Notes under the pieces: generated by a model
Databases searched by the model: none
The model's input: only the letters and a program-made list of their open reading frames with translations
What the model was told of the DNA's origin: nothing
NCBI GenBank assembly: GCA_002104905.1
Contig: MCFE01000126.1
Location: forward strand, 96,814 to 160,813
Origin: Basidiobolus meristosporus CBS 931.73
Lineage: Eukaryota; Fungi; Basidiobolomycota
Length of the DNA stretch: 64,000 nucleotides
Direction: 5' to 3'
In this document: in pieces, positions 29,631-63,957 of the stretch
Position numbering within the stretch: the first letter of the stretch is position 1
Layout: each line of letters begins with the position of its first letter
Position numbers and translations under genes: made by a program

Positions 29631-29650
29631 ACGCCCTCACCCCTACAACC

Positions 29651-30983: not shown

Positions 30984-31158
30984 TTTGACCGAATGTCCGT
31001 ATCCCCCCTCCCACATCAGCCCTCTTCGCTTACAACCAATTGTCCTATGTAACCGTTCAGGAGCCACATGTATATTAGTCACCCATCCCCATCCTTATCC
31101 CGATGCCGATATCTAACCCCACCCGTTTGTAATAAAGCAGTACCGTATCGAGGCTCGT

Positions 31159-31929: not shown

Positions 31930-33528
31930 ATGGGACTCACTGAAAAGTCTTACGAAGCCGAAGTGGACGGATACAATCAAGTCTTCTTGGGTAGCACCGA
32001 GGAGCAGTGGGACAAGCGGCGCGATGCCATCAACAACCTCCGATCCTCGCTGAAGGAAGCGGTGACGTTGCGCAACTTCATCCCCGTCTGTTTCATCGTC
32101 TCCACTCAGATCATCGAGTGCATCAAGAGCGAACGCACCCAGCTCTGCAATTTGGCCATGGACTACGTCGAGGAGATCGCCAAGTATGCCAAATCGGAGT
32201 TCGACCCTCTGGCCGAGTACTACCTGGCCAGCATCCTGAGAAACTGCGGACGTACCAACAAGATCGTCAGACTCAAGGCAGGCAACTGCTTGGCCTCGAT
32301 CATGTCGAACGCTGGGCCCACCAGCTGGTTCGTCAAAATGCTGAACGAGAAGTCCCACGAGAACAAGGACATCCGCGTTCACGTGGCCAAAGCGCTTAGC
32401 GCCGTGCTCAAGGACGGCCACGACATCGCCCATTTCGTCGTCCCTATCGAAGAGGCCATCTCAGTCTCCATCGCCGACGCCTCTCCGGAGGTCCGAGAGT
32501 TCGGCATGCAGTCCTACCGGGAGTTCTTCCAAAGATTCCCCGACAGGGAGCAGTCGTTCCGTGGTAAATTGGACATCAGCACCCTGAAAACCCTGGAAAA
32601 ACTCCAGGCCCGCCAGGCCTCCGCCGCCAACAAGAAGAGCCAGCGTCCAGGGATCGCCGAGCTGAAGCGTCAGATGAAAGCCAAGATGATGGCCAGTGCA
32701 CCAGCCAGTGATGTGATAATCGTCGCTGATCAACCTGAATCTGCTCCCATTGAGCCAGCCGCTCAAGAACAACCGCAACAAGATCCCGAGAACAAACCCG
32801 AACCCGAAGTCGCCAACGTTGCTGATGTCTCCACTGCCCCTGTTGAGAGATCTGAGCCTAGACCCCCCTCCCCTCCGAAGGTTGCACCTCTTTGCAACAA
32901 AGTTCCCACCAATGGACCCAGAAGAGCACCTGTTCAGGTGAAGCGTGCAGTCAAGCCACAACCTCCCACAGCAAGACCCTTGGAGGTGAAGACCAATACT
33001 GCATTGTTGTCAAAGCAAACACCCAGCCTACGTAGAACCAACCTCACCATGACTGGTGGTGCCCAGCGAGTGTTGAAGCCGGTGGAGCCCCTGAAGAAGA
33101 AACAACTGATTGGCGATTTGAAGAAAGGATCGATTCCCGCCAAAGCACCCTTGCAATCACAAAACCGCACGGTCAGGAATCCAATGGTGAAGCCTGCCAT
33201 CACCCAGCCTACGGCCAAGGTCAACAGCGGCATGCCCACCCCCAACTCCAAGCGTACCTTGAATATCAACAAAACCGAACTGCCCAAACGGTCCCTCTCC
33301 TCCCTCTCGGAACCCATCAACAATGACAACACCAAGCTGCCCAAGCCCACCCGGTTCAACGCGTCCAACTTTTCGAGACCAACCGCCTCGTCCAACGCCC
33401 GACTAGTTGCCACCACCAGCGAAACCCTCAAACGCAAGGAAACCATCGCCCGAGGCCTCTCGGTCAACGGGAAGCCAAGAAAAACCATCGGGACCACCGG
33501 ACCCCTCAGGGTGCTACGCAGCAATTGA
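31930..33528 (+). CDS. CLASP N-terminal (TOG/HEAT) domain protein with low-complexity P/K/S-rich tail
   Basis: EEQWDKRRDAI, SERTQL, ADASPEVRE HEAT-type motifs of CLASP_N. Likely ATG 31930; the ORF-track start at 31705 has atypical upstream sequence. Confidence 0.75.
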   Translation: MGLTEKSYEAEVDGYNQVFLGSTEEQWDKRRDAINNLRSSLKEAVTLRNFIPVCFIVSTQIIECIKSERTQLCNLAMDYVEEIAKYAKSEFDPLAEYYLASILRNCGRTNKIVRLKAGNCLASIMSNAGPTSWFVKMLNEKSHENKDIRVHVAKALSAVLKDGHDIAHFVVPIEEAISVSIADASPEVREFGMQSYREFFQRFPDREQSFRGKLDISTLKTLEKLQARQASAANKKSQRPGIAELKRQMKAKMMASAPASDVIIVADQPESAPIEPAAQEQPQQDPENKPEPEVANVADVSTAPVERSEPRPPSPPKVAPLCNKVPTNGPRRAPVQVKRAVKPQPPTARPLEVKTNTALLSKQTPSLRRTNLTMTGGAQRVLKPVEPLKKKQLIGDLKKGSIPAKAPLQSQNRTVRNPMVKPAITQPTAKVNSGMPTPNSKRTLNINKTELPKRSLSSLSEPINNDNTKLPKPTRFNASNFSRPTASSNARLVATTSETLKRKETIARGLSVNGKPRKTIGTTGPLRVLRSN

Positions 33529-33741
33529 TTTGTTGGGATGAACGGGACGAGTAATCGGATGGTGATTTTGTATAGTTTCCAATGTAATATAGTATCAAAA
33601 TAAATTATTTCTTTAGTCGATTGAAATCATTCCCAATCCCGCTTGGACCAGCTTGGACCAATGAATCATCCTTTCGAACAGATCCCTTTCATCTAGCGTG
33701 CAGGGAGGATTTCCATCTTCGCTAGGTACCTTTCTTTCACG

Positions 33742-36700
33742 ATGGAGACCGAGTTGACGCAACTGCACAATGTGCTCAACGGTCTGCCCACCATGTCAAA
33801 GGGGATTGTAGATAGCACTAGACATGAGAAGGTTTTCTCTTACATTCAAGGAAATATTACCAAGTACGGGGATGCGTTATATGAAGTGCTAGAAAAGTGG
33901 AACGTTGTCGATACACTATCCGTAAGTTTCCTCCCCCTTCAGAGCCCGCTTGGGTGTTCCCTATGTTGCTTCGAGAGAACAAACCTGTATTGACCGAGTT
34001 GGAAACTAGCGTTGCTTCGAAGAAAACCAGGACTTTCGAGTGACCTCCATAGGTTTGAGGGTCATTGGGCAGCTGATTGACTCGTTGGTGGCCAATCGGG
34101 AGACGCTGTTGGAGAAACTGTTCGCGGACACGAGTGTGTTTACCCAGTTGTGGGAGAGGTTGATTGGGTCGGAGGTGGCTTTACTTCGTTTCGCCTCCAT
34201 GGAATGCCTGAAGAGTCTGGTGAAAAGTAGACTCGGCGCTAGCTGGTGGGCTTTGCACTGTACTTGGGTTTGCGGAAGGGAATTTTGATTATTGATGGGC
34301 TTTTCTTTAGGTTGAACTCTTCGATCGAGTTCCCGGAGATCTTTAGCAACTTGTTATACGACTCAAGTAGCTACGTAAGTGGTTTCCACATATCTCGTGA
34401 TAGGTCGTCATGCTGAACTAGTGGTGCTTATTGTATAGGTTGTCTCCAGCAGCTGCGAGTTTTTCATTTACCTGGTCACCCTTCCGGACACACCGGGCTG
34501 GTCGGATGTTCACGAGGAGCTTCTAGGAAACCTTATCAGCTCCATGAAGCTACTTGCCAACTTGTCGGATATTACCAACCCCAATGGCTCGGTTCACAAC
34601 CGCGTATGCGAGTTGGAATTGATCTGGTCGTTGGTCCACTCAAAGCACCCGCGTTCGTTGAAGTTACTGCACGATCATAAAATGGTAGACTCGATGCAAC
34701 GCGCGATTAGCTACGACCATACTCATCTCCCTTTTTTCAATGCCTAGTTGATGAATATATACGCCCTGCACGGCGATGCAAACAGGGTGATTCAAACGAG
34801 GGCCAACGAGATCCTCAGCACCGTGTTCGAATGGGTGCCATATCCTTTGACATTGCTTGGACCCGCTGACACGTTCGAGCACACCACCAACCAGCAGCTT
34901 CAGTTACAACAGAGTAAGCATGTTCCCACTGGAATCCACATGAATCAACCGCTTATTTCTACGGACAGCCTTTGAATACAGCCTGGCGCACGTCGTGCTA
35001 CCTTTGTTACTGTCGCCAGAAAGCTTCAAGCCACTAGCAGCCATCAGTGTTCTGGACTCGATGGGGAAGCTTGTTCCACGAGATGAAATTCACCGAAGGA
35101 AAATGGGCCAGAGCCTTATAGAAGTCCTGGTTTTCCTGCTTTCTTTGGCGTCGAATCAGACAGACGAGGTAGTGGTGGATTGTCTTACTGCCGACCAGCT
35201 GTTGGAGATCGAACAGAAGGTGGGGCTGCAGCCTAGTCGTTCTCCATCACATGCCTACTAACAGCGTTCATTGTCAGCTGCATGAGCAGTTCGCAAAGGG
35301 AGTTCGGGTAAATACCAATCGTAAGGCTATCGTCCTGAGAACACTGCTGGTTCTTCTCTCTGTCATCAAGAGCGAGCACAACACACTTCAGGTATGGTGG
35401 CAGTATGGTCATTTCGAACGAATCTACAATGACCGGGACATTTCTAGTCCGTAGACTTGATAGACCACTGTTTACATACATTGTCGAATTCAACATTCAA
35501 CCAAGATCAGCGGATTCTGAAGAATGGACTGGCCCTGTTGCATCAACTGTTCGAGCATTTGGAGGAGCAGATCGATGATCAAAAGCTCACCAAGGTATGC
35601 CATATGCTCTAGACTGGCCATGTGAGCCAGTATACTGATGCTTCAGTCATCTCAGGTGTTGAATGAATTGCTGAGCATTCTGAATAACCCGGGATTGTCT
35701 TGTCATGGAGTGAGGCTGCTTCTGGATACATTCAAACATTTCTTGAATACACCAGCCATCGGTCGGGCCGTGTTGAACGTGGGGATTGTGGTGTAGTGTT
35801 AGCACGAGTTTGGGGCCAGCGTTAACTCCGGATTTTCTTCACTAGAGCGTTGGCGAGAGACTGTCTGACGTGTTGGAGAGTAAGTGCTATGACATGAACT
35901 GGGATGTGCGTGATACGGTGCTGGAATTCTTTGGAGAGCTGTTCAATGAGGTAGGCATGACGAGCAGCGCCGGGTGATCCCCCTGAAACTAACGATCCGC
36001 GCAGAATTGCCAGCATGGAATTGAGTTGATCCTCTCGTTTAAGTTGTTGAAAATGGTCATGGAGAAAGTGGCGGATGCCGAGTCGTACGTTCGTGCCTCT
36101 GCCGTACAGACGCTTGGGGTACGTGGATCTGGTCTGGGCTTACTCTTTGCATCTCATCTGACGGGAATTTAGGCTGCAGTGAAGAACCAGAGCGGATGGT
36201 CCGATTTGCATTTGCATGATGGGATCCGCAATCTACTAGGGAAAATGCCCGACCTTCTGTGTGACACCGAAGCATTTGTCAGAAGGGCGGTTTTCGATCT
36301 GATCACGTGCTTGATCAGCTCAAGACAGTATACGCGACTGTTCTTCTCGAGTGAAGCGGGGGAAGAGCCAATCCTGAGGTGAGAAAGCTTGTGAATGTCC
36401 ACCGACCATTCTCTTTAACCATCTCTCATAAGCCACGGGTTGCTGATGAGGCTACTCGACGATTGCGATTGGGAGGTTAGAGTCCGCGGAGTCAAATTCC
36501 TGTACGAGTTGTGGATGGTCAGCTGGAACGAACAAGAATACCGGAACAAACGCGAGTCCTCTGCAGCAGTCAACTGGTTCTTCAACGTGAAAGCTGACGA
36601 GTTGCTGCTAGCGACGGTTGGTTCGGGAGCGATTCATGGTGCTTTGTTCTGATGTACTGACCGGTATCCCTTCTAGATTGAGGATTCGTCTAGATTGGTT

Positions 36701-36976
36701 CGTGGGGAGAGCCTCTCGGCAATCCGCAAGATACTCAAGACCTCTGCGGGCACCGGTACCCTTCAGGGAGGGAAGAGAGATATTCAAGACACACAGGAGT
36801 TGGCGCACGACCAATTCTTGGAGAAGTTACGGAAGATCGACCTGGTCAGGTTGGAAGAATCCGTCGAGGTTGAGCATTTGTATAAAGAAGCCTTAGAGAA
36901 TGACTCGGTTGATAATGAGACTATGATGGAGACCGACCAGCCAAACATCGGAAACAACATCCTGGAATGCTATTGA
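33742..36976 (+). CDS. Multi-exon ARM/HEAT protein, BRAT1-like
   Basis: N-terminal VDSTRHEKV, WDMRDTVLEF, CDTEAFVRRAV, DDCDWEVRV and a C-terminal ILECY* resemble BRAT1 (terminal xCY). Many short GT-AG introns; exon structure not fully resolved. Confidence 0.6.
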
Positions 36977-37274
36977 TTCTTTAGGCAATAAAATCACCTT
37001 GTTGTTGGCCAGCTAATCAGTTAAAATGAGTAATATAATCAGGAAATGCATGGAGATCGGTTAGGATTCTGACTGATTAGCCCACACGTCTAATGGCTCT
37101 TACCCGACCAGCCATTCACCTGGATCCAATCAATTTTTTGCTCCCATTGCTAATGCACGATTGAAAGTTTTCGTAGGAATTTTCATTGAAATTCGCTTTG
37201 TTAAAGAGAGGTTAACCTAAGCTGGTACGGTGTGAACCCTTATCTCTCGTTTCCACCACAGTTCTCTTTTCACC

Positions 37275-40200
37275 ATGACTGATAGTAGTAAGGTATTTGG
37301 GCGAGATTGGTTCGGCTCAGGAGTGGGTTATAAGTGTACTGATTTTCCTGCGTGTCTAGTCTCAGTGGTCACAGATCGTTCCCGATTCGGCCTCGGCTGG
37401 GGAGATATTGGCGATGGTGCAGATTTTCAACGACTGCTTTCGAGCAAGAACAGATGCTTGGAGTAAGAGGATGCTGATTGACCCCTTTGTTACCCCACGG
37501 AATCCATTAACGCGGTTTTTTGTAGACATCTTGCAAGGCTCCGAAGCAAAGTTTTCCTCCTTTTTTACACGCGTCCTTACGCTTGCCCTTCCAAAGCACA
37601 AGGGAGACGATATCGAGGTGCGCAAGGAGGCTTTGATCTTTCTCATAAACTGCTTTCAAAGTCTGGAGAATCCCACCATTAGAGCCGAATGCATGAGGTA
37701 GCCCTCCCTCAAAGTTAGTCTATCTCTCAAGGCCCATCTAATCACCAGCCAAACCCTACTTTGTAGAATCGCTTCGTTGTCGATCTGGAATTGCGTGGCT
37801 TCCCCTGTACGCCGTGAGGCGGAATTCAAATCGGTTCCTCAATTGAAGAAGTTCTGGAGACACCTGGAGAAGAAATTCAACGCCGCCGGTAAGAACTGAT
37901 CGGAGCTAGCTTCTGCTCGGGTGACAACTAACACCATGTTTTGGCAAAGATGATGCCACAAAGGAGCGTCTCAGTTTCGATAGGAAGTGGCTTTCGAACC
38001 TTTTGGCCGGGTTCGTAGATATCTTAGACTCCATCCCCGAAGAAGGGGAAGGTAAGCATCACCAAGGGCACTCCTCCATTCCCCTCGAGACGACTAATCC
38101 TGCTTTCAAGTCTCTATCCACTCCGTATCATACTGCGAGCGTTTCCTTGAGTTCCTGATTGATTTAGAAGCACAACTCCCAACCCGAAGATATTTCAATA
38201 CTCTTCTAGACGATCATAATATTGTGGTTTCGTGTACCCTTTCGGCATTAGCACATAGACCTGACTGGTACTTCATCCTCGATAACTTCCCTCCAAGTGA
38301 TGTGTGTACTAACGCGTAAATGGCCCATGTAGCACCCGATTCCAACAGCTGTTGAATATGCTCAAATTCTACTCACGATTCGAGATTAACGATCAAACAG
38401 GTTCGGCCTTGACGGATAGCGAGATGACCGACTTGCATTCCAAAAGACTGCTGGAGCTTCAGGTGCGCTTTTCCCCAATCCCCCCAATCTCCATGAACCC
38501 CTGCCAACATGTTGTTTTTGTAGCGAGTTGCCTTCTCCTCGTTCCAAAGCCAGCTGAGCCCCCTGGCCCTGGCGAACATTGGTGCCATCGAGCGTAGAGT
38601 GGACCTTGAAAGGCACTTTGACAAACTCTCCGACGAAGAGTTGATTCGTCTGTGCCAGATTCTTGGGCTCCGCACCCAAAAGGTGAACAAGGACGGCGAG
38701 AACGTTTCGCGGAAATTCCTGATAGAGATCCTTGTTTCGCGATACGAAAAGAGAACGAGTCAGATAGACGCAGTGAATGCCATGCCACTCTATCCCGATG
38801 AAAATCTCCTCTTCGACGAACATCTGGAACAGACGGAATCCTACACCGGAAATGAGGTGCTGCCCCTTCCCAAGCTGAACCTCCAATTTCTGACCATTCA
38901 CGACTACCTGCTACGCAACTTCAATCTGTTTCGTCTCGAGTCCGCCTACGAGATCCGACAAGATATCGAGGATGCCGTCAAAAGACTGGCCCCCAAATTA
39001 ATCTTCCCCGAGCGAACGACCGAATTCACTGGATGGGCCAGGATGGCTATTCCTATCGAGACATTCAGCATCGTGGATGTGGAAAAGCCTAATCTTGGGG
39101 AGAAGAAGCCGGCCAAGGTGGCGGCCGACGTGACGTTCAACATCAGTCGCTATACCCCCTCGATACGTGATGAATGGAGCTCTCTTCGTCAGCATGATAT
39201 CCTGTTCCTGCTGACATTGCAGGCAACCAAGGAGTCCCACGCAAAGTACGAGGCCGGGAAGTCGTTCAAGCAGCACTTCGGATTGAAATATGTTCGTGGC
39301 TGTGAGGTCTCGGCCATTCTTGGCCAAGACGGCAAACCGGTCGATGAGTTCATGGACCCAGAGGCCAAGCAGGAATTCTTGGAGGCGAAGACGCGTACAA
39401 TCCGTGTGATGCTGGACCCCAACCAGTACCAAGCAGACATCGACCGCTTCTCGGCCAAGAAGGGGGAGGATGTTCACGAAACGTTCAACGTATTGTTACG
39501 CCGGAATCCCAAAGAAAACAACTTCAAGGGGATCTTGGAGACGGTGCGTGATCTTATGCAAAGCGAGCTGGTCGTGCCTGACTGGTTGCACGACATCTTC
39601 CTGGGATACGGAGACCCTAGCAGCGCCCACTATACCAACATGCCCAACACCCCCAAATCCATTGATTTCCGAGACACGTTCCTCGACTATGCCCATGTCA
39701 AAGAGTCGTTCCAGGACAAGGAGGTTGTTCCTGCGGAGAATTTCGTTGAGCCTGTGTCTCCACCACACGTGATTGAATTCCCGCAGGCTCCACCGAAAAT
39801 CAAATCCGGCACCAAAAGAAAGGCGCCCGAGGAGAGCCAGCAGGTGGACGGCGACCAGAACAAGCTTGTTGTTAGCACGTACACCCTTCCTAACATGGGC
39901 CCCTACCCCTTCAACGTGCCGAATAAGAATCAGATTCGATTCACACCTTCTCAAGTGGAGGCCATCAAGGCAGGCACCAACCCTGGCTTGAGCCTGATTG
40001 TCGGCCCCCCGGGAACCGGCAAAACCGATGTTGCGGTCCAGATCATCGCCAATCTTTACCACAACTTCCCCAACCAACGTATCCTGCTGGTTACTCACAG
40101 CAACCAGGCGCTGAACCAGCTCTTCGAGAAGATCATTGCTCTCGATGTTGACGAGCGACACTTGCTTCGCCTGGGCCACGGTGAGGAAGAGCTGGACACG

Positions 40201-41694
40201 GAGGAGAGTTTTGGCAAATACGGAAGAGTCAACTCGTTCTTGGAGAAACGACTCAGCCTCCTAAGTGAGGTCGACCGCATGGCCAAGTCGCTCCAGCTTA
40301 CGGGGGATCACGGGTATACTTGCGAGACCGCCGGGTACTTCTATCTATATCACATCCTGTCCCGGTGGGAGCCATTCATTGATCGCATGCAGAGTCTTGA
40401 GGGCGATCAGGCACTGGTCCAGACCATTGTGGACGAGTTCCCGTTCACCATGTACTTCGCCAACGCCCCGCAGCCTTTGTTTCCCGAGGCGGCCACTTTT
40501 GAAGAGGCCCTGGAGATTGCCCAAGGGTGCTTCAGACACATCAAGAACCTATTCACACAACTAGAAGAGATCCGTGCTTTCGAGCTGCTTCGTACTGGCT
40601 ATGACCGTTCGAACTACCTGCTCACCAAAGAGGCCAAGATTATCGCCATGACATGCACACATGCGGCGCTGAAGCGTCGGGAGCTAGTCTCGCTCGGATT
40701 CAAGTACGACAACATCGTCATGGAGGAAGCGGCGCAAATCCTGGAGGTGGAGACGTTCATCCCCCTGCTCCTTCAGGACTCAGAAGAGGGGCGGTCGCGG
40801 TTGAAGCGGGTGATCATGATTGGTGATCACAACCAGTTACCGCCGGTGGTCCAAAACGTGGGATTCCAGCAGTACAGCAATATGGAGCAGAGTCTGTTCA
40901 CCAGATTTGTTAGGCTTGGGGTGCCCACGGTGGATCTGGATGCCCAAGGTCGTGCCAGGCCCTCCATCGCCGAGCTGTTCAACTGGAGATACAAGAAGCT
41001 CGGCAACCTCCCCATAGTTGCCCAGAAGCAGGAGTACCAGCTTGCCAACGCCGGCTTCACCTACGACTACCAACTGGTCAACGTCGATGCGTACGAAGGC
41101 TCCGGGGAAACGGAGCCCACCAAGTATTTCTATCAGAACCTGGGCGAGGCCGAGTACGCGGTGGCCATATTCCAGTACATGCGTCTGCTAGGCTACCCTG
41201 CCGAGAAGATCTCCATTCTGACCACCTACAACGGGCAGAAGGCGTTGATCGAGGATGTGTTGAGGGTGAGATGCTCGTGGAACCCCATGTTCGGCAAGCC
41301 AGCCAAGGTCAGCACAGTCGACAAGTACCAGGGCCAACAAAATGACTACGTGATCCTGTCCCTGGTTCGTACGAAATCCGTTGGACACATCAAGGACGTT
41401 CGACGCCTGATTGTGGCGATGTCTCGTGCCCGTCTCGGACTCTACGTCCTCTGCAGAAAATCGCTCTTCGAGAACTGCGAGCCGTTGGCCGAGGTGTTCA
41501 GCAAGTTCGCCCAGCGACCAGACAAGCTCAGCCTGGAAATCAACGAAAAGTGGCCCTCCGCACGCCCGCTGGAGGACACAGGCAAGCCGTTCCTGATCAA
41601 CGACGTTACCCACATGGGAGCGTATGTCCACCAAATGACTCAAGAGCAGGTGGAGCATGCGAAAAAGGCCGACCAAATGGACGAAACACAGTGA
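37275..41694 (+). CDS. AQR: Intron-binding spliceosomal helicase Aquarius (AQR/Cwf11), multi-exon
   Basis: [66 protein letters not shown]. The 5' exons are less certain. Confidence 0.95.
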
Positions 41695-41777
41695 ATTTCC
41701 TATCTTTTACTCAATAAATGTATATATAAGATACCCCGGTTTATATTATATTTTTATGTTCTCTACTATAATACAGC

Positions 41778-42836
41778 TCACTGTTCTATTCCAAATACGC
41801 AATCTCTAGCTTTGTGGCCAGGCTCCAGACAGTGATGACAGTGGTCATGGTCGAAGCGGCACACGTCCATCTTTCCGCATCCCTGGGCATCGTAATTGTG
41901 TGGTCTACAGATTGGCTCCCCGGAGGGTGAAAGACGGACTGGGTAGCGTAAAGGCTTACGGACAAAGTTCTCGGACCGAGCGCGCAAAAACCATGGCTCA
42001 GCCAATGGCGTATGAGGGTCGGCACATCCAAGTAAGAAGGAAGAAAACCACTCGGACGATACACGGCCTGCCATCTTGGCGCTGGCGGTGGGGGTAAGCT
42101 GAGGTAGGGCGAGGGCGAACAAGGCCTCGTTCTTCACAATGATGGTTTCTACTCGAGGTAATAGGAACTTCATCACCTTCACAACGCTTTCCACATCTCT
42201 GTTACCTCCGATATCTACAAACGCCACATTGATCTTGTGCTCCGATATGAGGGTTTGTACCCGCCCAGGATTATGAAGAACGTCCAGACACTCAAATATG
42301 CAGTGTGGAAAGCGTTTTCGAGACTCCACAAACAGGGTAGGTGAGGTTTCTAACCCAACAACCGTACCACAATGCTGAGACAATATGTCTGTGCATATAC
42401 CATATGAGGAGCCGATTTCTAATACATTGTCTGTTTGAAGGATTTGTGCGCGAGCCAGACGACGATACTCGGTAGTGTGCGGGCACAAGATAATGGTTGC
42501 CGGTGAGTTCGGGGCCGCTCTAGGAAATACAGGCGATAGCCGACAAGGATTCACCTGGTAAGTGGAGTCGTCAGAGTGATACCTAACCTGTACTCTATCC
42601 TGAGCCACTTGGTCTTCAGTAGAAGAGATCACGGTAGCGCGTCCAGTGTTCTTATCGGAACGCAACATGACAAAAACTTCGTCGCCTGGGCCGAAGGAAT
42701 AAGCAAGAGGGGAATCCTGGGTAGGGGCAGAGCCTGGATTCGGAGGAGAGAATAAAAATAAACTAGGGATAGGCTCATCTTGCGAAGCAGATGACGAATG
42801 GTCAGCGTTAGGAGCAACAGGCGGAGTAGAAGTCAT
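41778..42836 (-). CDS. SH3/KOW-like + SAM-dependent methyltransferase-like + C-terminal CCCH/CCHC zinc-finger protein
   Basis: Intronless ORF. VLEIGSSYG motif I, GLET motif II, VAFVDIGGNR. C-terminal C-x9-C-x5-C-x3-H then C-x2-C-x4-H-x4-C. First ATG at 42836. Confidence 0.65.
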   Translation of the reverse strand: MTSTPPVAPNADHSSSASQDEPIPSLFLFSPPNPGSAPTQDSPLAYSFGPGDEVFVMLRSDKNTGRATVISSTEDQVAQDRVQVRYHSDDSTYQVNPCRLSPVFPRAAPNSPATIILCPHTTEYRRLARAQILQTDNVLEIGSSYGICTDILSQHCGTVVGLETSPTLFVESRKRFPHCIFECLDVLHNPGRVQTLISEHKINVAFVDIGGNRDVESVVKVMKFLLPRVETIIVKNEALFALALPQLTPTASAKMAGRVSSEWFSSFLLGCADPHTPLAEPWFLRARSENFVRKPLRYPVRLSPSGEPICRPHNYDAQGCGKMDVCRFDHDHCHHCLEPGHKARDCVFGIEQ

Positions 42837-43730
42837 ACTGTATCTATTATTCCAAGTCGGAAAATGCTCCAAAATGAACTATAATATGTAGCAATATTTG
42901 AGCACTTTTTTTTACTAGCGAAAATCACAAATGCTCGAGGTGGTCCAAATTTATAGAAATCTCAAATCTTGTTGCTGTTAATTTGATCATTGTTCCAATC
43001 TTGATGTTCCCTTGTTCAGCAACTAGGATAATTACTAGAGGCACAACTAAATGCTGGTAAAGGAGGTAGGTATAGATTAAAACTATTTATATAAAAGGGG
43101 TCTCCCATATGCAGTATGGTTATATATTCTTGTTGATACTAGACAAGACCAAATACGGGATCTCTAGGATATAACTGTATTGAATCTACTCATTGCTACA
43201 TATACATATCTGGTCTGTAGAGGACTGTAGACTATCTGATTGCCAGGCTTCAGAGATTTTACTGCAGTGCAACTCCCAATATACAGTACTCAATGGCTTA
43301 GACTAGAAATAGCTGACTACCTTTTTCCTGAGAAATTCCTCTGATATGTTTGTGAGCGCCCATATTAGTATGAGGCTATTACACACTACTATAAACATTG
43401 CACCATTGATTGACTCATTTGTTGGGGAGTGATATGTCAGTTGGGAATACAAATAATTAGGCCTTGAAATATCTACAGTTTGCTAGCTTAGCACACAGTA
43501 ATATGCTGAAAGTAGAAATGAGAACCAGGAAGTTAATTGAAGTGCCTAGATGCATACATCTTGAGGATTCATTGGGTGGGGATATAGCACTTATACATCT
43601 CAGTACACTCAGGGAATAGAATGGTAAGAGCTCCTGGAATAAGGTCCCAGGAAGCTGTGTACAAAGATTGGGGTCCTTTGGACTAGATCCAAGATTCTGT
43701 AAATACTGTGCAAGATAAAATTCCAAGTAA

Positions 43731-44393: not shown

Positions 44394-44933
44394 TTACTGG
44401 TGCCAGAGAAATGAGACCCCATTGCCGGTATAGAAGTTGCCGTAGGATGTGGTGTAGGTACCCCCTTGTCCATTGAACTTGTAGTTCCAGTTGCTTGTGT
44501 ATACGCTGCCGTCATTGTTGATGCGCTCCACCACCGCAACGTGGCCAGTCGAGCCGCAGCCCTGGTAGCCTGGCTGGATGACAATGATGGAGGGGACTCG
44601 TGGCTGACTGGACACCACCCACCCATTGACATTGCGAGCACTGGATGGCCAGGTGCGAGCATCGCCCCACCACTGGGTGTGCTGACAGGTCAGCTCGTAG
44701 TAGCGAGCGTCGGCCCAGTCGGTGCACTGGCCATTGTTGAATCGGAACTGGCGAGAGCACGAGGCCAGCACCGAGATGTTGGAGAGCTTGCTTGGTGTGC
44801 CAGACACCTCGGTTTGATTCAGCCGAGCAGAGTTGGAGGGCACGGCTTGAGTCGGTAGAGCCTCGGTTGATGTGGCCAGGAAGGCAGTGGCGGCAGCGAA
44901 TAGATAGGTCAGAGTGGAGGTCAACTTCACCAT
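44394..44933 (-). CDS. Secreted CHAP-domain protein (putative peptidoglycan amidase/endopeptidase), copy 1
   Basis: Hydrophobic signal peptide. NGQCTDWA (catalytic Cys), WWGDARTW, GHVAVVE (catalytic His). 179 aa, intronless. Confidence 0.88.
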   Translation of the reverse strand: MVKLTSTLTYLFAAATAFLATSTEALPTQAVPSNSARLNQTEVSGTPSKLSNISVLASCSRQFRFNNGQCTDWADARYYELTCQHTQWWGDARTWPSSARNVNGWVVSSQPRVPSIIVIQPGYQGCGSTGHVAVVERINNDGSVYTSNWNYKFNGQGGTYTTSYGNFYTGNGVSFLWHQ

Positions 44934-46378: not shown

Positions 46379-46918
46379 TTATTGGTGCCAGAGGAATGAG
46401 ACACCATTACCAGTATAGAAGTTGCCATAAGAGGTGGTGTAGGTACCCCCTTGTCCATTGAACTTGTAGTTCCAGTTGCTTGTGTATACGCTGCCGTCAT
46501 TGTTGATGCGCTCCACCACCGCAACGTGGCCAGTCGAGCCGCAGCCCTGGTAGCCTGGCTGGATGACAATGATGGAGGGGACTCGTGGTTGACTGGACAC
46601 CACCCACCCATTGACATTGCGAGCACTGGATGGCCAGGTGCGAGCATCACCCCACCACTGGGTGTGCTGGCAGGTCAGCTCGTAGTAGCGAGCGTCGGCC
46701 CAGTCGGTGCACTGGCCATTGTTGAATCGGAACTGGCGAGAGCACGAGGCCAGCACCGAGATGTTGGAGAGCTTGCTTGGTGTGCCAGACACCTCGGTTT
46801 GATTCAACTGAGCTGAGTTGGAGGGCACGGCTTGAGTCGGTAGAGCCTCGGTTGAGGTGGCCAGGAAGGCAGTGGCGGCAACGAATAGATAGGTCAGAGT
46901 GGAGGTCAACTTCACCAT
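46379..46918 (-). CDS. Secreted CHAP-domain protein, copy 2
   Basis: Same motifs; near-identical to copy 1. Confidence 0.88.
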   Translation of the reverse strand: MVKLTSTLTYLFVAATAFLATSTEALPTQAVPSNSAQLNQTEVSGTPSKLSNISVLASCSRQFRFNNGQCTDWADARYYELTCQHTQWWGDARTWPSSARNVNGWVVSSQPRVPSIIVIQPGYQGCGSTGHVAVVERINNDGSVYTSNWNYKFNGQGGTYTTSYGNFYTGNGVSFLWHQ

Positions 46919-48191: not shown

Positions 48192-48731
48192 TCATTGATG
48201 CCAGAGGAAAGAAACTCCGTTACCGGTATAGAAGTTGCCATAAGAGGTGGTGTAGGTACCCCCTTGTCCATTGAACTTGTAGTTCCAGTTGCTTGTGTAT
48301 ACGCTACCGTCATTGTTGATGCGCTCCACCACCGCAACGTGGCCAGTCGAGCCGCAGCCCTGGTAGCCTGGCTGGATGACAATGATGGAGGGGACTCGTG
48401 GTTGACTGGACACCACCCACCCATTGACATTGCGAGCACTGGATGGCCAGGTGCGAGCATCACCCCACCACTGGGTGTGCTGGCAGGTCAGCTCGTAGTA
48501 GCGAGCGTCGGCCCAGTCGGTGCACTGGCCATTGTTGAATCGGAACTGGCGAGAGCACGAGGCCAGCACCGAGATGTTGGAGAGCTTGCTTGGTGTGCCA
48601 GACACCTCGGTTTGATTCAGCTGAGCAGAGTTGGAGGGCACGGCTTGAGTCGGTAGAGCCTCGGTTGAGGTGGCCAGGAAGGCGGTGGCGGCAACGAATA
48701 GATAGGTCAGAGTGGAGGTCAACTTCACCAT
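48192..48731 (-). CDS. Secreted CHAP-domain protein, copy 3
   Basis: Same motifs; protein identical to copy 2 in the ORF track. Confidence 0.88.
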   Translation of the reverse strand: MVKLTSTLTYLFVAATAFLATSTEALPTQAVPSNSAQLNQTEVSGTPSKLSNISVLASCSRQFRFNNGQCTDWADARYYELTCQHTQWWGDARTWPSSARNVNGWVVSSQPRVPSIIVIQPGYQGCGSTGHVAVVERINNDGSVYTSNWNYKFNGQGGTYTTSYGNFYTGNGVSFLWHQ

Positions 48732-49636: not shown

Positions 49637-50176
49637 TTACTGATACCAGAGGAAAGAAACCCCATTACCGGTATAGAAGTTGCCATAAGAGGTGGTGTAG
49701 GTACCCCCTTGTCCATTGAACTTGTAGTTCCAGTTGCTTGTGTATACGCTGCCATCATTGTTGATGCGCTCCACCACCGCAACGTGGCCAGTCGAGCCGC
49801 AGCCCTGGTAGCCTGGCTGGATGACAATGATGGAGGGGACTCGTGGCTGACTGGACACCACCCACCCATTGATATTGCGAGCACTGGATGGCCAGGTGCG
49901 CGCATCGCCCCACCACTGGGTGTGCTGGCAGGTCAGCTCGTAGTAGCGAGCGTCGGCCCAGTCGGTGCACTGGCCATTGTTGAATCGGAACTGGCGAGAG
50001 CACGAGGCCAGCACCGAGATGTTGGAGAGCTTGCTTGGTGTGCCAGACACCTCGGTTTGATTCAGCTGAGCAGAGTTGGAGGGCACGGCTTGAGTCGGTA
50101 GAGCCTCGGTTGAGGTCGCCAGGAAGGCAGTGGCGGCAGCGAATAGATAGGTCAGAGTGGAGGTCAACTTCACCAT
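49637..50176 (-). CDS. Secreted CHAP-domain protein, copy 4
   Basis: Same motifs; ends FLWYQ. Confidence 0.88.
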   Translation of the reverse strand: MVKLTSTLTYLFAAATAFLATSTEALPTQAVPSNSAQLNQTEVSGTPSKLSNISVLASCSRQFRFNNGQCTDWADARYYELTCQHTQWWGDARTWPSSARNINGWVVSSQPRVPSIIVIQPGYQGCGSTGHVAVVERINNDGSVYTSNWNYKFNGQGGTYTTSYGNFYTGNGVSFLWYQ

Positions 50177-51235: not shown

Positions 51236-51775
51236 TCATTGGTGCCAGAGGAATGAGACCCCATTACCAGTATAGAAGTTGCCATAAGAGGTGGTGTAGG
51301 TACCCCCTTGTCCATTGAACTTGTAGTTCCAGTTGCTTGTGTATACGCTGCCATCATTGTTGATGCGCTCCACCACCGCAACGTGGCCAGTCGAGCCGCA
51401 GCCCTGGTAGCCTGGCTGGATGACAATGATGGAGGGGACTCGTGGTTGACTGGACACCACCCACCCATTGACATTGCGAGCACTGGATGGCCAGGTGCGA
51501 GCATCGCCCCACCACTGGGTGTGCTGGCAGGTCAGCTCGTAGTAGCGAGCGTCGGCCCAGTCGGTGCACTGGCCATTGTTGAATCGGAACTGGCGAGAGC
51601 ACGAGGCCAGCACCGAGATGTTGGAGAGCTTGCTTGATGTGCCAGATACTTCGGTTTGATTCAACTGAGCTGAGTTGGAGGGCACAACTTGAGTCGGTAG
51701 AGCCTCGGTTGAGGTGGCCAGGAAGGCAGTGGCGGCAGCGAATAGATAGGTCAGAGTGGAGGTCAATTTCACCAT
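51236..51775 (-). CDS. Secreted CHAP-domain protein, copy 5
   Basis: Same motifs; upstream flank unrelated to the other four copies. Confidence 0.88.
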   Translation of the reverse strand: MVKLTSTLTYLFAAATAFLATSTEALPTQVVPSNSAQLNQTEVSGTSSKLSNISVLASCSRQFRFNNGQCTDWADARYYELTCQHTQWWGDARTWPSSARNVNGWVVSSQPRVPSIIVIQPGYQGCGSTGHVAVVERINNDGSVYTSNWNYKFNGQGGTYTTSYGNFYTGNGVSFLWHQ

Positions 51776-53492: not shown

Positions 53493-55111
53493 TCATTTCT
53501 CCGGAGTACCGAACTTCTCTTTGGTGATAGTATAGGTGAGGAGCATTTCACCTTCGGATCGGAGCTTCATGGTGTGGGTTCCGACCTCCCATTCAGTGAA
53601 ATTGCCATTCACGATGGTACTGTCAAAACCGCCATTCCAGGTATCGTCGTCGATAAAGTTCAAATAAAGTGAGAAGGGTGGCGAGACGTCATCAGCCAAG
53701 TCAGTGAACACCGTTGCCTTTGGTGATTTGATGAAGTTCACGTCTTGTCCCGCCCTGATGGATTGATATCTGGGCTTCTCAACCGACCAGATGTACTGTC
53801 CATTCAGCACGATGTCGCCCCAAGCCTCCGCGGTGTCATCGCTCGCGGGCTCCGCGGGATCGATTAGTTTTAAAGAGACGATCTTGAAAGTCCACTTGTA
53901 GCCACGGCGAACGGGATGGCAGGCCTTGATGGTGTATTTGGTGGTCTCGCTGACGGCCGCAAGGTTTCCATTAGCGATGCTACGAAGGGTATAGGAAATG
54001 GGGACGTAGGTTTCCAAAGTAGATTCCTGACTAAAGAAGGAGTTAAGGTTTCCGTCCCGAATCAGATTGATGGCAGCCTCTCGGTTACCACCGATAACAG
54101 CGACGCTAATTTTCGATTCGCTAAGAAGCTTCTGATGTTTGATATCGAGATTGCTGTCAACTCCCAGCTTCAGACCATTGTAGGAGGCCTGGATGGTTGC
54201 GCGTATATCCGAAGAGCTAGCAGAAGAGGTTACCGAGTAAAGCAATACACGCCCGTAGCTAATGCTGGACACAAAGATTGGAAGGTTGTCGGGTCCAAGT
54301 CGACCAAAGCGTATTTGTTCCTTCAAATCCTGCATGGTGAATTGGCTGTTAAAGAAGTCAGCAGGGGTTTTAGGCATTGCGACATCCACGGTGAATGCTT
54401 TCTCGACGAAGTATGCGGCAATGGTATTTTCGGTGTAGTTGCGTTGAGTGTCTAGGGCGGTCTTTGCTTGGAATGCCAAGTACTTGGCGCCAAAACCCAG
54501 GTTTAATGCAGCTGATTCGGCAGAGTTGACCTCGACTGTTTTGTAATGAATATTAGCTCCGGGCCTGTATCCACCGGACTTGGCATGAGACACTAAACCC
54601 GCAATTGCATCACGGACAGCTCTGCGCAAGAAGTTAATTATCAAAAGGCAGAGATGGCAATATACAGGCTTACTTACCCAGAGTCAGGTTTGCAGATGGA
54701 AGATGAGCTCTTTCCATTCAAGAAGTCCACCGTAATCTTCTGTTCGTTGCGATCCCCAATGGGAAGAGGCTTGAATCCTCCTACGCCATCCACATATCCT
54801 TTGCCTTGAAGGAGAGCACCTAACCAGAAGGCATCTGATCCAGTACCAAAAGTTACCAGCTCCTTGGGGGTGTCTGTCAATGTGATGTCCTGGACCGAAC
54901 ATTCAAGCTGAACGCTTCCCATGGAGGCCTCTTGACTTTTAACATCCCCTTTGATGGTGTCCGATGATTGAACGTTAGCAAACTTATCCCAGTCTGGCAA
55001 GGTGGCAAAGTAGTCATTGATTTGGCTACGGTCCGAAGGCAAATCGACGGGAGCAGCGTTCACCTTCAAAGCAGTCAGAAAAAGAAGAGAGATGGCAGAG
55101 AACTTTAACAT
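53493..55111 (-). CDS. Secreted thiol-activated/cholesterol-dependent cytolysin-like (CDC-like) protein, 2 exons (55111-54678, 54621-53493), 520 aa
   Basis: Signal peptide. FWLGALLQG, AYFVEKAFTV, PIFVSSISYGRVLLY, VIGG and VPISYTLR are CDC pore-forming core motifs. A 56-nt intron GTAAGT...TTAAC...CAG (54677-54622) joins the two track ORFs in frame (PDSG|AVRDAI). Confidence 0.85.
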
Positions 55112-59869: not shown

Positions 59870-62623
59870 CTACTGTTGTAGCTTTGATACAAGAGTGTGT
59901 AGCTGAGGGGAATTTGTAGGTAAGTTAATAAGAAGTGATGATAGCTCTTCAGTGCTCAAGACACTGTTCAGTGGGAAGGGGGGTAGCAAGAGAGGTAAGA
60001 ATGACTTGTGAACAACATTAATGAGGGGAATGTGATAAGGATTGATATTCATCATAAAGGGAGTGTGCTGCTGCAGATATTGCTGCCAAAGGTCTGTCAA
60101 GTACTTCAGGTAGGCCAGCTTGGGTTTTTCTGACTGCAGAATATAGTGAGCAAACTTCTTGACTTCAGGATCTCCAAGTATAGTTCTCCAGCAGGAGTCA
60201 GGTGTTGTGTGGTGTGTTCTCTTCCAGGCCTTAATCAGTGGGTTGTTGCAGTTGTGAAGTCTGAGGTATAATCTGGTTCTAAGGTAGAGAAGTCTGATCT
60301 TATAGGGCATAAACCCAAAAGCACCAAGAATAGCATGTCTGTAGGGGCATTCAGGCAAATGAGGCACCAAGGAGGTAATGCACCATACTGCAAACTTGTC
60401 AAGCTTAGTGCAGTCTCTAGAAGTAAGAGAGAGAAGTGGTAAGCCAAATTCCAGGACAGGGAAGACAAACTGCTTGAGTAGAAGGAGGCAGCTGGGAGCT
60501 GAAGTTGTAGGAGGAGTAACAGCCAGTAGCTTGTGGAGTGCCTGTCTTGCCAGGATAATTCTCTTCTTCAGATGTGCTCCAGAGTCTAGTCCAGTAGGAA
60601 GGAAAGGAAAGCCAAGATATGTAGCAGAAACCTGAGCAGGTAGAGTGGAGTTCTCCAAGTTGATAGGAGAGCCCAAAGGTACTGTCTTTGCAATGGAGAG
60701 CTGGAGATTATTCTTCTGCAGATACTGCTGGATGGTCTGGGAGTCTTGTTGCACATTGGAGGAGGATATTCTGATGTCATCAGCAAAGAGAGTAACCAGG
60801 CAGTCAGCTGAGAGTCTTGGGAAATCATTCAGGAAGATGGCAAACAGTATAGGACCAAGCACAGAGCCTTGAACCACTCCATTAGGAACTGAGAACACAG
60901 CTGATTGCTCACTTGGGTGCAGAATTCTTGCTTGTGGATCCAGAAACAGAGACCTGACAAGGAGGGTGAGAGAGGTACTGGAGAAGCATTGCAACTTGGA
61001 CCAAAGCAGATTTCTGTCAACTGAATCAAAGGCCTTAGTAATATCAAACAGAACAGAGGGATACTTGCACTGGAGAGAGTGATCTTGGCTAAGTATGACT
61101 GCATATTCCAAGGAGAGGCCAGGAACAAAGCCAAACTGTGCAGGATGAAACTTGAGGGAGTCAGAGTAGAGCTCCTGAGCAAGCAGAAGCTCAAACACCT
61201 TTCTGCAGGTGGGCAGCAGAGATATTGGCCTGTAGGAGCTAGGATCCAGGTGCTTTCCTTTACCCTTGTACAGTGGCAGAACATTTGCAAAGGACCATTC
61301 CTCAGGAGTAGAAAGCTGGGCTGAGTATTGCTGAAACAGTTGAAGCAGAAGTGCAGACATGGCCTTGGTACTAGTCTTCAGAAGCTCATAAGAGATTGTG
61401 TCCACACCTGGAGCAGTAGAGTTGGGAAGCCTCTTGAGCACATTATGGATTCTCCTTTGATCAAGTGCAAGTGGGATGGGCAGAGTCTTGAAGTCAGGAT
61501 GAAAGCCAGGAGTTGAGTACTGCTTTGTAGAGAAGAAGATGTTAGCCAGCTGTTCTGTTGAAGGTAACTTCCTGGAAGAGGGCCTCATTGCCCTGTAGAG
61601 TCTTGATACTGTTCTTGTTATAGAGTTGGAAGATTGCAGAGGCAAAGAACTCATAATATGATCCCAGAGCTGAGTATGCAGAGTGTGGTGAATTGCCTTG
61701 GAGTGGTGTATTGCTGTCAGGAGGAGTTTCTCTGTTTTTGGGTTAGGGAAACTCAGGTAGCTTTGTTGCAGGGCTGAAACAATGGATTCCCATTTTCTTG
61801 AGGTAACAGCAGTAGTCTTGCATGGCAGTGAGAGGGAGGCAGACACCAGAATCAGATGCTTCACAAAGAGCCAGGCATAGTTGAGATCATCTGGCAGAGA
61901 AAGTAGCAAACTGGCAAGCTTCAAGTAGTTCCCAAAGTCTTTCTTCTGATTCTTGGTAGCTTTGTGGGTGAGCACAGTAAGTTTTGGCAGCTTCTTCTTC
62001 ACAACTGGTTGCATAGAAAGGGACCAGGCTGGATGGTCAGAGGCTCTCAAGGATCCTAGCTCAGCTCCAGAGAATTGCTTAACTTCATTCACAAAGTAGA
62101 GGGCAGCAGCAGAAGGGCAGATCCAGTCAACACATCTTTTCTCAGATTGAGCACCTAGTGCTAGCAGGTGGCTTTCTCTCAGGAAGTTCAGTAGGAATGT
62201 AGACCTTGGCTTCATTCTTGCAGTCAGAGTAGTCTTGTTCTCAGGATGGGGAATGTTGAGATCTCCAAGCAAGATAACAGGTGTTGATATAGATTGTTGG
62301 TATTGCTGAACCTTCTGGCATATAACTTGCACTTCTTGAAGGGCAAGACTTGGAGGCAGATAGCAGAGCACCAGACTGATAGTTGGCAACTGGAGAGCAG
62401 CACAGTAAGGGGAGTAAAGAGGAACACAGAGCTGAGGAGTATTGATGGTAGAAGAGATGAAGCAGATAGAGGAGGTATTCTTTGTTCTAGGAGTAGAAAA
62501 GCAATATAGATTAGTCAAAAGTATAGAGGGTAGCTGGACATCAATCAAACACAGGAGGGAAAATCTTGAAAGAAGTCTCTCTAGAGTTGGTCTTGATGGC
62601 TGTATGCTGTTGCAGTTAAGCAA
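59870..62623 (-). CDS. LINE ORF2: AP-endonuclease + reverse transcriptase, 917 codons, uninterrupted
   Basis: APE motifs LNCN, YLPP, GDLN, VDWI, SDH. RT motifs APGVD, YRPISLL, QFGF, DITKAFDSVD, GVVQGSVLGP, LFADD, YLG. No ATG at the start. Confidence 0.92.
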   Translation of the reverse strand: MLNCNSIQPSRPTLERLLSRFSLLCLIDVQLPSILLTNLYCFSTPRTKNTSSICFISSTINTPQLCVPLYSPYCAALQLPTISLVLCYLPPSLALQEVQVICQKVQQYQQSISTPVILLGDLNIPHPENKTTLTARMKPRSTFLLNFLRESHLLALGAQSEKRCVDWICPSAAALYFVNEVKQFSGAELGSLRASDHPAWSLSMQPVVKKKLPKLTVLTHKATKNQKKDFGNYLKLASLLLSLPDDLNYAWLFVKHLILVSASLSLPCKTTAVTSRKWESIVSALQQSYLSFPNPKTEKLLLTAIHHSKAIHHTLHTQLWDHIMSSLPLQSSNSITRTVSRLYRAMRPSSRKLPSTEQLANIFFSTKQYSTPGFHPDFKTLPIPLALDQRRIHNVLKRLPNSTAPGVDTISYELLKTSTKAMSALLLQLFQQYSAQLSTPEEWSFANVLPLYKGKGKHLDPSSYRPISLLPTCRKVFELLLAQELYSDSLKFHPAQFGFVPGLSLEYAVILSQDHSLQCKYPSVLFDITKAFDSVDRNLLWSKLQCFSSTSLTLLVRSLFLDPQARILHPSEQSAVFSVPNGVVQGSVLGPILFAIFLNDFPRLSADCLVTLFADDIRISSSNVQQDSQTIQQYLQKNNLQLSIAKTVPLGSPINLENSTLPAQVSATYLGFPFLPTGLDSGAHLKKRIILARQALHKLLAVTPPTTSAPSCLLLLKQFVFPVLEFGLPLLSLTSRDCTKLDKFAVWCITSLVPHLPECPYRHAILGAFGFMPYKIRLLYLRTRLYLRLHNCNNPLIKAWKRTHHTTPDSCWRTILGDPEVKKFAHYILQSEKPKLAYLKYLTDLWQQYLQQHTPFMMNINPYHIPLINVVHKSFLPLLLPPFPLNSVLSTEELSSLLINLPTNSPQLHTLVSKLQQ

Positions 62624-62638
62624 CAGAACTTCAGGTAG

Positions 62639-63957
62639 TCAGGCAGAGGTTGTAGCTTCTTCAGAGGCAGCATTGATAATGTGACCTGCAGAGTCCCAGA
62701 GCTCTTCAAATGGTGCATCACTTAAGTCAGCAAGGAGAGAAATGGCATGATTCTTGAGGAAGTATGCCACATCATAGGAGGGGGCTTGTCTCTTGATGGC
62801 AGCAAAGAAAGACAGAATGGCAACATGGGCTGGAGGCTTGTTGAACAGTAGAGAGTCAGAGGATTCAGATTCTTCAGGCACTATCTTGAAGTCAGTTTTC
62901 AGCCAGTTAAGGTTCTTCTCCACAAAGGTAACAAATGGGTCAGCAATGTTTTGGTCTAGGATAACCTCCAGAATCTTCCCTTTTCTCCAGGCCAGGTTGA
63001 CAATTCTTGAGAGCTGAATATTGCATGCCTTGAGTGCTTTCCTGATGTTGGAAATGGGAGTCCAGGGAACTTGCTTCAAGTACACCACAGTCCAGGTAGA
63101 AGCTGGTGGTAGGTTTGCTGGGGGCTTGTAAGTCCTTCTGTGTTGCAATGGAGCTGCAGTAGTCAGATTGGAGTCCACATTCTCAGTAGAAGGTTTTCTT
63201 GATGTGTCTTGCTGAATGGTACTGGAGCTGGATGTGCTGATAATTCTTGCTAGAACCTTGCCTGCATAAGTCTGAGGTATAGCTGAGGTGACTGTAGAGG
63301 TGGTGGCAGCTGGTGCAGGTGGAGAGGCAGAGACTGAAGCAGGAACTGAGGTCACCTGGGAGAAGGCAGTGGAAGCAGGTTTTCTGGGAGGAACAGAGTT
63401 CACTATCCAGTTGTTCTGTAAAGCACTGGAGTAGCTTTTCTGTGGAACAGGATCTTGCTCTTGAACAGGAACAGAAGCAGGAGGCTGGGGCTGAGCAGTA
63501 GTGGTAAGGCAGTGGCACTCCAAGGAAGCTTTTTGCAAGGCATCTCTGGCAGTTTTCAGGGCAGTATTGGCTTCATTCTTGAGCTTCTTGCATTGGGCAT
63601 CCAGTCTCTTGTTTTCAATAGCCAGGGCATGTATTGGCAGCCTCTAATATCAGCAATTCTCTTCTCAATTGCAAGGAATCTCTGAAGAAATGCATCAGTA
63701 GAAGTGCTGGCATCTGGGAGAGCAGTGGCAGGAATAGAGTCCATTGACAGTGGGCTTCTTGGAGGCAAGGAAAGTGGACTGGCAGATTCAGGCACAAAAG
63801 GAGATATCCTGGCAGGAGGAGAAGGAGTATCCAAGGCAGTAACAGAGGCAATTCTTGTTGGTGAAGCAGCAGCAGGGGAGGCAAGCCTGTTCAGAAACTG
63901 GGCAGGAGAGAGTGCTTGAGGAGAGGGAGTCTTCAGCTTGCCAAGCATGTCTTCCAT
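62639..63957 (-). pseudogene. LINE ORF1 (P/S/A-rich, coiled coil), apparently with two +1 frameshifts near 63648 and 63632
   Basis: ORFs 63556-63957 and 62639-63538 join into a continuous heptad (EKRIAD-LEAAN-HALAIENKRLDAQCKKLKNE) if two single bases are removed. Confidence 0.6.

Follow-up and report, generated by a model that had tools for sequence, protein, structure and literature searches.

The stretch of DNA analysed here, referred to as the window, is the terminal 64 kb of contig MCFE01000126.1 (160 kb; assembly GCA_002104905.1) of the fungus Basidiobolus meristosporus CBS 931.73. On its minus strand, from 55111 to 53493, lies an intact two-exon gene whose product is related to the cholesterol-dependent cytolysins (CDCs), a family of pore-forming toxins, and more precisely to the CDC-like proteins (CDCLs). 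The two exons correspond to two open reading frames (ORFs) in different frames, the second of which closes with the stop codon at 53493-53495. Removing the segment from 54677 to 54622 joins them in frame and yields 434 + 1129 = 1563 nt, or 520 codons plus a stop, while a read-through of exon 1 without splicing meets a stop at the first intron codon. A preliminary description of this DNA had taken the two ORFs for a single gene split by a 56-nt GT-AG intron with a branch-like TTAAC. This is borne out by the restored frame and by the occurrence of the same intron site in five gene copies.

These five copies are the window gene itself, two further loci of B. meristosporus and two loci of B. ranarum. 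In their genomic DNA, the site and phase of the intron are identical in all five. The coding flanks of the intron are conserved among the Basidiobolus copies, whereas the intron bodies cannot be aligned. Intron lengths are 56, 58, 59 and 71 nt in the four complete copies, all of them GT...AG, with a GC content of 0.27 to 0.41 against 0.44 to 0.53 for the exons (0.39 against 0.48 to 0.50 in the window gene). Bacterial homologues have no intron and are colinear with the spliced product, with no gap at the junction. Exon 1 alone matches a CDCL of Deinococcus yunweiensis (BLASTP E = 2e-20), the match stopping two residues short of the junction, and the alignment of the spliced public paralogue with the same bacterial protein runs unbroken through it. 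The public protein for the window gene, P0001, has the identical exon 1/exon 2 junction, which its Pfam match crosses, and our translation of exon 2 is 100% identical to its residues 136-510.

Selection was measured exon by exon with the Nei-Gojobori method. The ratio of non-synonymous to synonymous substitution rates (dN/dS) lies between 0.01 and 0.13 for exon 1 and for both portions of exon 2, the one coding for domains 1-3 and the one coding for the C-terminal domain; it is 0.13 for exon 1 compared with the B. meristosporus paralogue, and 0.03 to 0.10 for the C-terminal portion. Between the two Basidiobolus species, synonymous sites have reached saturation or nearly so. Such values point to strong purifying selection, maintained on this gene over a long time. 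Exon 2 is kept in frame, as its low dN/dS indicates, and would therefore be translated after splicing. The shared site in five copies, the gap-free alignment with bacterial proteins, the junction in P0001 and the selection on both exons together argue that the intron is real, and 54677-54622 can be considered a spliceosomal intron, predicted to be removed from the transcript.

Could the gene nevertheless be a decaying relic that retains its intron, so that fragments or nothing at all are made? Splicing is a prediction, and one of the other B. meristosporus copies (P0005) is cut short by a contig end and has one position of the signature motif changed. However, both exons are open in four full-length copies, and the low dN/dS on either side of the intron, despite saturated synonymous sites, would be unexpected unless exon 2 was translated in frame with exon 1. 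We regard decay as highly improbable.

The 5' end of the gene differs between our reading and the public annotation. P0001 has an alternative first exon of 18 nt, which finds no support in the models of the paralogue or the orthologues: those of the paralogue and the two B. ranarum genes (P0002-P0004, 520-525 residues) all start at the equivalent of ATG 55111. Conservation favours this start over the one at 55525, and the 5' end of the public model appears doubtful. With the ATG at 55111, the window copy would begin with a secretion leader, predicted from a hydropathy peak of 2.16 at residues 5-15, and there is no Cys in its first 60 residues. The leader type is conserved in P0002-P0004. It is without a lipobox Cys, whereas the leaders of some bacterial relatives are lipobox-like. 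This prediction agrees with the eukaryote-style signal peptide lacking a lipobox Cys that had been noticed initially.

The Pfam family PF01289 (Thiol_cytolysin), which covers CDC domains 1-3, matches P0001 over profile positions 89-345 of 353 with an E-value of 3e-26, and exon 2 alone with an E-value of 2e-23. Among proteins of the PDB, exon 2 matches vaginolysin, intermedilysin, streptolysin O, perfringolysin O and other CDCs (E = 3.5e-14 to 6e-7; about 1e-14 to 1e-10 for vaginolysin, intermedilysin and perfringolysin O), as well as the CDCL of Elizabethkingia, in its short form (E = 7.5e-9) and, marginally, in its long form (E = 0.007). Exon 1 alone has no Pfam or PDB match; its homology is visible only against close bacterial CDCLs.

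CDCLs were defined by Evans et al. 2020 (mBio, PMC7527733) by an F/Y-F/Y-Xn-YGR motif, a downstream glycine pair, whose role is given in the same paper, and the lack of both the undecapeptide and the Thr-Leu pair. The YF...YGR motif reported in the preliminary description can be read directly in the translation, with 50 residues from YF to YGR, against 41 in perfringolysin O (PMC7527733). In an alignment of 34 sequences, the Gly of YGR is invariant, as are both glycines of the pair that opens the alpha-beta loop (G312 and G313); the Tyr and Arg of YGR reach a conservation of 90% or more.

An AlphaFold2 model of P0001, built from 34 relatives, has a mean pLDDT of 74.6, with values of 84 to 95 across most of the core. 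Structure comparison with perfringolysin O and with CDCLs had been proposed as a check on the gene: in Foldseek searches the model matches perfringolysin O with an E-value of 4e-24 (1e-24 to 1e-19 for perfringolysin O, intermedilysin and pneumolysin together), CDCL structures of the long and short forms (8g33, 6xd4, 8g32) with E-values of 8e-16 to 1e-12, and perforin with an E-value of 1e-6. Domains 1-3 are thus predicted to have the CDC fold. The motif, the glycine pair, this predicted fold and a divergent C-terminal domain make the protein a CDCL.

Is it a true CDC, which would bind sterol through a domain 4? Domains 1-3 do match the classical CDCs best, and the protein is named 'Perfringolysin' in GenBank. 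However, when the two exons and P0001 were compared with Pfam, no family except PF01289 appeared at E ≤ 1, hence no CDC domain 4; nor is there any CDC domain 4 among the top 50 Foldseek matches of a model of the C-terminal domain. The undecapeptide, in the form quoted in PMC7527733, is absent on reading the translation, as the preliminary description had stated. The Thr-Leu pair is absent too, and the protein counts as a CDCL in the classification of Evans et al. A sterol-binding CDC of the classical type therefore has very little probability.

What, then, is the C-terminal domain? These 146 residues form a putative binding domain that differs from CDC domain 4. A word search with it returned matches in Basidiobolus only, and a search of 1.84 billion representative proteins gave Basidiobolus and two weak matches to repeat proteins (PKD and CUB). 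We dropped homology to PKD or CUB proteins as a candidate: the PKD match is confined to the last 48 residues, its E-value is inflated by seven repeats, and we treat it as a reflection of general beta-sandwich resemblance. Taken alone, the C-terminal part matches the Deinococcus protein with an E-value of 2e-5 and an Armatimonas protein with an E-value of 2e-4, and it is colinear with both. Because the Deinococcus CDCLs align end to end with the fungal protein, this domain was inherited from bacteria together with the rest of the gene. The preliminary description had spoken of a non-cholesterol targeting domain; the lack of a CDC domain 4 agrees with this, but the domain is no fungal innovation, as it is already present in the Deinococcus CDCLs.

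A separate AlphaFold2 model of the C-terminal domain is an all-beta sandwich with a pLDDT of 69. Almost all of its top 50 Foldseek matches are C2 domains, including that of perforin, and these matches are weak (E = 1e-3 to 2e-2, TM-score 0.24 to 0.40; E about 1e-3 and TM-score 0.3 to 0.4 for the best). Pfam C2 has no match on the C-terminal part at E ≤ 1. The five Basidiobolus domains were aligned with eight bacterial domains that are comparable in length. Acidic columns are kept in all Basidiobolus copies and in 62-100% of the eight bacterial relatives; they form two clusters, at P0001 positions 396-400 and 459-468. Several Gly and Trp columns are likewise kept in 62-100% of the bacterial domains. 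It is possible that this C2-like domain works in the manner of a C2 domain, perhaps depending on Ca2+, rather than being a member of that family; we offer this as a lead and not as a result. In bacteria, several proteins with the same domain 1-3 core (P0013, P0014, P0026, P0028-P0030) carry extra Pfam modules: Laminin_G_3, Big_2 or FG-GAP/VCBS repeats. Accessory domains are therefore freely exchanged in this branch of the family.

Table 1. Features of the CDCL gene and of the rest of the 64-kb window (window coordinates)
Feature	Position	Strand	Remarks
Exon 1	54678..55111	-	434 nt = 144 codons + 2 nt from ATG 55111; leader and N-terminal part of CDC-type domains
Predicted secretion leader	55055..55111	-	about 19 residues, no Cys; from hydropathy, putative cleavage site
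Intron	54622..54677	-	56 nt, phase 2, GTAAGT...CAG
Branch-like TTAAC	54637-54633	-	12 nt from intron acceptor
Exon 2	53493..54621	-	1129 nt including stop = 1 nt + 375 codons + stop
Pfam Thiol_cytolysin region (CDC domains 1-3), split by intron	53934..54754	-	P0001 residues 110-364
Tyr-Phe of F/Y-F/Y-Xn-YGR signature	54408..54413	-	direct reading
Tyr-Gly-Arg of signature	54249..54257	-	direct reading; 50 residues after YF
Glycine pair opening alpha-beta loop	54087..54092	-	direct reading
C-terminal beta-sandwich (predicted)	53496..53933	-	146 residues, putative binding domain; not CDC domain 4
Alternative first exon of public model P0001	55508..55525	-	18 nt, then 444-nt intron 55507-55064 skipping leader
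Five CHAP genes	44394-44933, 46379-46918, 48192-48731, 49637-50176, 51236-51775	-	tandem, intronless
364-residue ORF	41778-42872	-	weak methyltransferase-like Pfam matches (E ~1e-3); between housekeeping block and CHAP array
Aquarius, spliceosomal helicase	38599-41694	+	
CLASP_N protein	31705-33528	+	
Galactokinase	27170-28816	+	
NAD-dependent epimerase/dehydratase	25346-26458	-	
Copia-type reverse transcriptase ORF fragment	6847-8064	-	RVT_2, E 9e-41
Non-LTR retroelement	59870-63538	-	917-residue ORF, endonuclease + reverse transcriptase (RVT_1 E 9e-26); near contig end

Outside Basidiobolus, all relatives found are bacterial or metagenomic, with 23-41% identity. A scan of bacteria with one genome per species returned 69 loci with relatives, in Deinococcota, Gemmatimonadota, Armatimonadota, Rhodothermales, Calditrichota, Myxococcota, Proteobacteria and other lineages. 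The two best are from D. yunweiensis, where the gene is carried by plasmid pDYP1, and D. rufus; they align over residues 26-514 of the 520-residue paralogue, with 35% identity over 507 columns and an E-value of 1e-99 for D. yunweiensis. By alignment, the closest full-length relatives are the CDCLs of Deinococcus and Armatimonadota. On the plasmid, the D. yunweiensis gene (L006 2434-4497) stands between genes for a TPR protein and a periplasmic-binding protein, and an upstream open frame could give its product an N-terminal extension of about 180 residues from a putative start.

A phylogeny had also been suggested at the outset. In a neighbour-joining (NJ) tree, 163 of 200 bootstraps group the Basidiobolus copies into a single clade, but no bacterial sister group is supported, and for this reason we name no donor lineage. 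The gene, its putative binding domain included, came to an ancestor of Basidiobolus from a bacterium. A single spliceosomal intron was gained after the transfer, followed by duplication. The transfer is older than the split of the two Basidiobolus species and than the duplications. The origin by horizontal gene transfer (HGT) put forward in the preliminary description thus stands, on account of the exclusively bacterial or metagenomic relatives outside the genus, the shared intron and the fungal contig.

Bacterial contamination, or a chimeric assembly, would be another explanation for the bacterial affinities: the family is overwhelmingly bacterial, the window has three zones of different GC content, and 203 B. 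meristosporus proteins were discarded as contaminants in a published screen. It is contradicted by the GT-AG intron common to five copies in two independently assembled species, and by a best bacterial identity of only about 40%. The GC content of the exons (0.48-0.50) is also typical of the surrounding DNA. The gene lies about 12 kb from genes for Aquarius, CLASP, galactokinase and an epimerase, and is flanked by retroelements; since these fungal genes and retroelements surround it on the same contig, we exclude contamination, which retains next to no probability. The three zones of GC content occur naturally within a single fungal contig and do not mark a join between sources.

Two side observations concern the other copies. 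Both B. ranarum genes are followed by an ATP-synt_E gene (L003 8190-8677 and L004 5950-6383). This arrangement points to a duplication of the locus in that species, whether segmental or of the whole genome. The third B. meristosporus copy (P0005; L005 72-1450, on contig MCFE01000746.1), incomplete at the contig start, is the most divergent, with 74% identity and a departure from the signature motif at one position; the constraint on this copy may be relaxing.

Adjacent to the window gene are five genes with a CHAP domain, in an array 1.7 kb downstream. They share 95-97% DNA identity and are spaced by 1.4-2.0 kb. Their 179-residue products have an N-terminal leader and match Pfam PF05257 with an E-value of 3e-15, and among solved structures they come closest to staphylococcal CHAP amidases (peptidase C51). 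They make up a family of the bacterial or phage peptidoglycan-hydrolase type, amplified in the fungus.

How does the fungal protein compare with known systems? It is of the same kind as the CDCLs of Evans et al. 2020 (PMC7527733), with the same motif, glycine pair and domain 1-3 fold, no undecapeptide and a divergent C-terminal domain. With the CDCLs of D. yunweiensis, D. rufus, Armatimonadota and Abditibacteriaceae the architecture is shared end to end, C-terminal domain with its acidic and Gly/Trp columns included; these bacterial genes differ in being intronless, and their proteins are uncharacterised. With the classical CDCs (perfringolysin O, intermedilysin, vaginolysin, pneumolysin) the fungal protein shares the sensor motif and glycine pair, and they provide the best matches to its domains 1-3, but they have a domain 4 with sterol-recognition motifs, which it lacks. 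Perforin, composed of a MACPF and a C2 domain, offers another parallel: the same pore superfold is followed by a C-terminal beta-sandwich, and C2 domains are the best structural matches to that of the fungal protein. The similarity of the cores is remote, however, and the C2 likeness of the fungal domain is weak and has no Pfam backing.

The two-component CDCLs of Bacteroidota, EaCDCL of Elizabethkingia and BfCDCL of Bacteroides (PMC11169675, PMC11952106), belong to the same superfamily; proteins of this group act independently of cholesterol and were shown to kill bacteria (PMC11169675). These systems combine two subunits, one long and one short, with activation by a protease and a lipoprotein that confers immunity, whereas no short partner was found for the fungal protein, and their sequence likeness to it is much weaker. 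The window holds no obvious candidate for an immunity lipoprotein, on inspection and with no comparator-based search. The fungal protein might still be the long subunit of such a protease-activated, complement-like pair, its short partner being encoded elsewhere. It is of the same superfamily, its model matches 8g33, 6xd4 and 8g32, and the two-component mechanism is the sole one demonstrated experimentally for CDCLs. Its sequence gives a marginal match to the long form of Elizabethkingia, however, and no short CDC-like ORF was found in any of the places considered: a tblastn search of the 64-kb window with P0002 returned just the two exons and no second CDC-like ORF, there is no short form among the Basidiobolus proteins matched (206-656 residues; the remainder of the genome was not scanned directly), and none at the D. 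yunweiensis locus. We give the two-component arrangement a slim chance. Because no short partner turned up in the window, among the Basidiobolus proteins or beside the Deinococcus gene, the toxin looks single-component.

Taken together, these data make it very probable that the gene encodes a secreted single-chain CDCL, a beta-barrel pore-former acquired from a bacterium by an ancestor of Basidiobolus, which later gained an intron, was duplicated and has been retained. Pore formation is suggested by the fold and the motifs, and the following mechanism can be proposed. The leader would direct secretion. The C-terminal beta-sandwich would use its conserved acidic loops, perhaps together with Ca2+ like a C2 domain, to bind a component of the target membrane other than cholesterol. 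Domains 1-3 would then assemble into a ring-shaped prepore, in which the YF...YGR/GG sensor would free the two helical bundles of domain 3; on refolding, these would supply the hairpins that make up a large beta-barrel pore. The targets would be other organisms of the gut, dung or litter niche. Bacteria are a reasonable guess that falls somewhat short of an even chance, and eukaryotic cells rank a little lower; our slight preference for bacteria comes from the bacterial killing by Bacteroidota CDCLs and from the five secreted CHAP genes adjacent.

Alternatively, the protein may serve the fungus's own biology, for instance in remodelling of cell wall or membrane or in spore release, rather than act as a weapon. 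Developmental proteins do exist among eukaryotic MACPFs, and several copies have long been kept under purifying selection. The predicted secretion leader, the conservation of all pore-sensor motifs and the adjacent genes of the secreted peptidoglycan-hydrolase type argue in the other direction, and we consider such a role improbable. A bolder extension of the toxin hypothesis is that the proteins of Basidiobolus, Deinococcus and Armatimonadota form a separate clade of single-component CDCLs with a C2-like, Ca2+-dependent lipid-binding module. A perforin-like architecture would then have arisen independently in bacteria before moving to a fungus, where it would form part of an antibacterial island with the five CHAP hydrolases. 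This is speculative, and as a whole we think it unlikely.

Several points weigh against a secreted, single-chain toxin of bacterial origin directed at other organisms. Splicing, the start codon and secretion are all deduced from sequence, and the public protein (510 residues) begins at 55525 and has no leader. In the NJ tree no bacterial neighbour exceeds 24% bootstrap. Domains 1-3 are nearer, in sequence as in fold, to the classical CDCs, which target eukaryotes, than to the antibacterial CDCLs of Bacteroidota, and CHAP genes are found at none of the other four Basidiobolus CDCL loci (one in five only). Finally, the C-terminal model is moderately confident, its C2 likeness is weak and has no counterpart in Pfam, and there is also a resemblance to PKD repeats over its last 48 residues.

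The preliminary description was correct about the gene, which was however already known: it is annotated in GenBank, and Evans et al. 2020 (mBio, PMC7527733) report that B. meristosporus CBS 931.73 has three CDCL genes. The B. meristosporus row of their Figure S2 has N-terminal residues specific to the window copy and is this protein. The intron, the B. ranarum copies, the neighbouring genes and where the C-terminal domain came from go beyond what their paper describes, and the main text of two papers on HGT in Basidiobolus (PMC7466969; bioRxiv 10.1101/2021.12.02.471044) makes no mention of the gene. What our analysis adds is modest: the intron conserved across species, the measured selection, and the bacterial origin, weak C2 likeness and acidic columns of the putative binding domain; further, the failure to find a short partner, the doubt cast on where the public model begins and the adjacent CHAP array.

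The locus offers a clean and well-documented case in which a large pore-forming toxin gene passed from bacteria into a fungus, where it gained an intron, was duplicated and has long been retained. Basidiobolus lives in the guts of amphibians and reptiles and occasionally infects humans. The name 'Perfringolysin' is misleading for a protein that lacks the cholesterol-binding domain, and is better replaced by CDCL. For an uncharacterised CDCL clade, the inherited and weakly C2-like domain, its acidic loops, the lack of a detected short partner and the CHAP neighbours provide a testable idea of what the ligand may be.

In the remainder of the window, positions 24001-42000 are gene-dense, with a GC content of 0.52, and carry usual eukaryotic genes. 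Positions 1-24000, where GC falls to 0.37, have next to no long ORFs and look like a repeat-rich, possibly degraded transposon region. At the opposite end, the 917-residue ORF of the non-LTR retroelement is preceded by a 299-residue ORF with no Pfam match.

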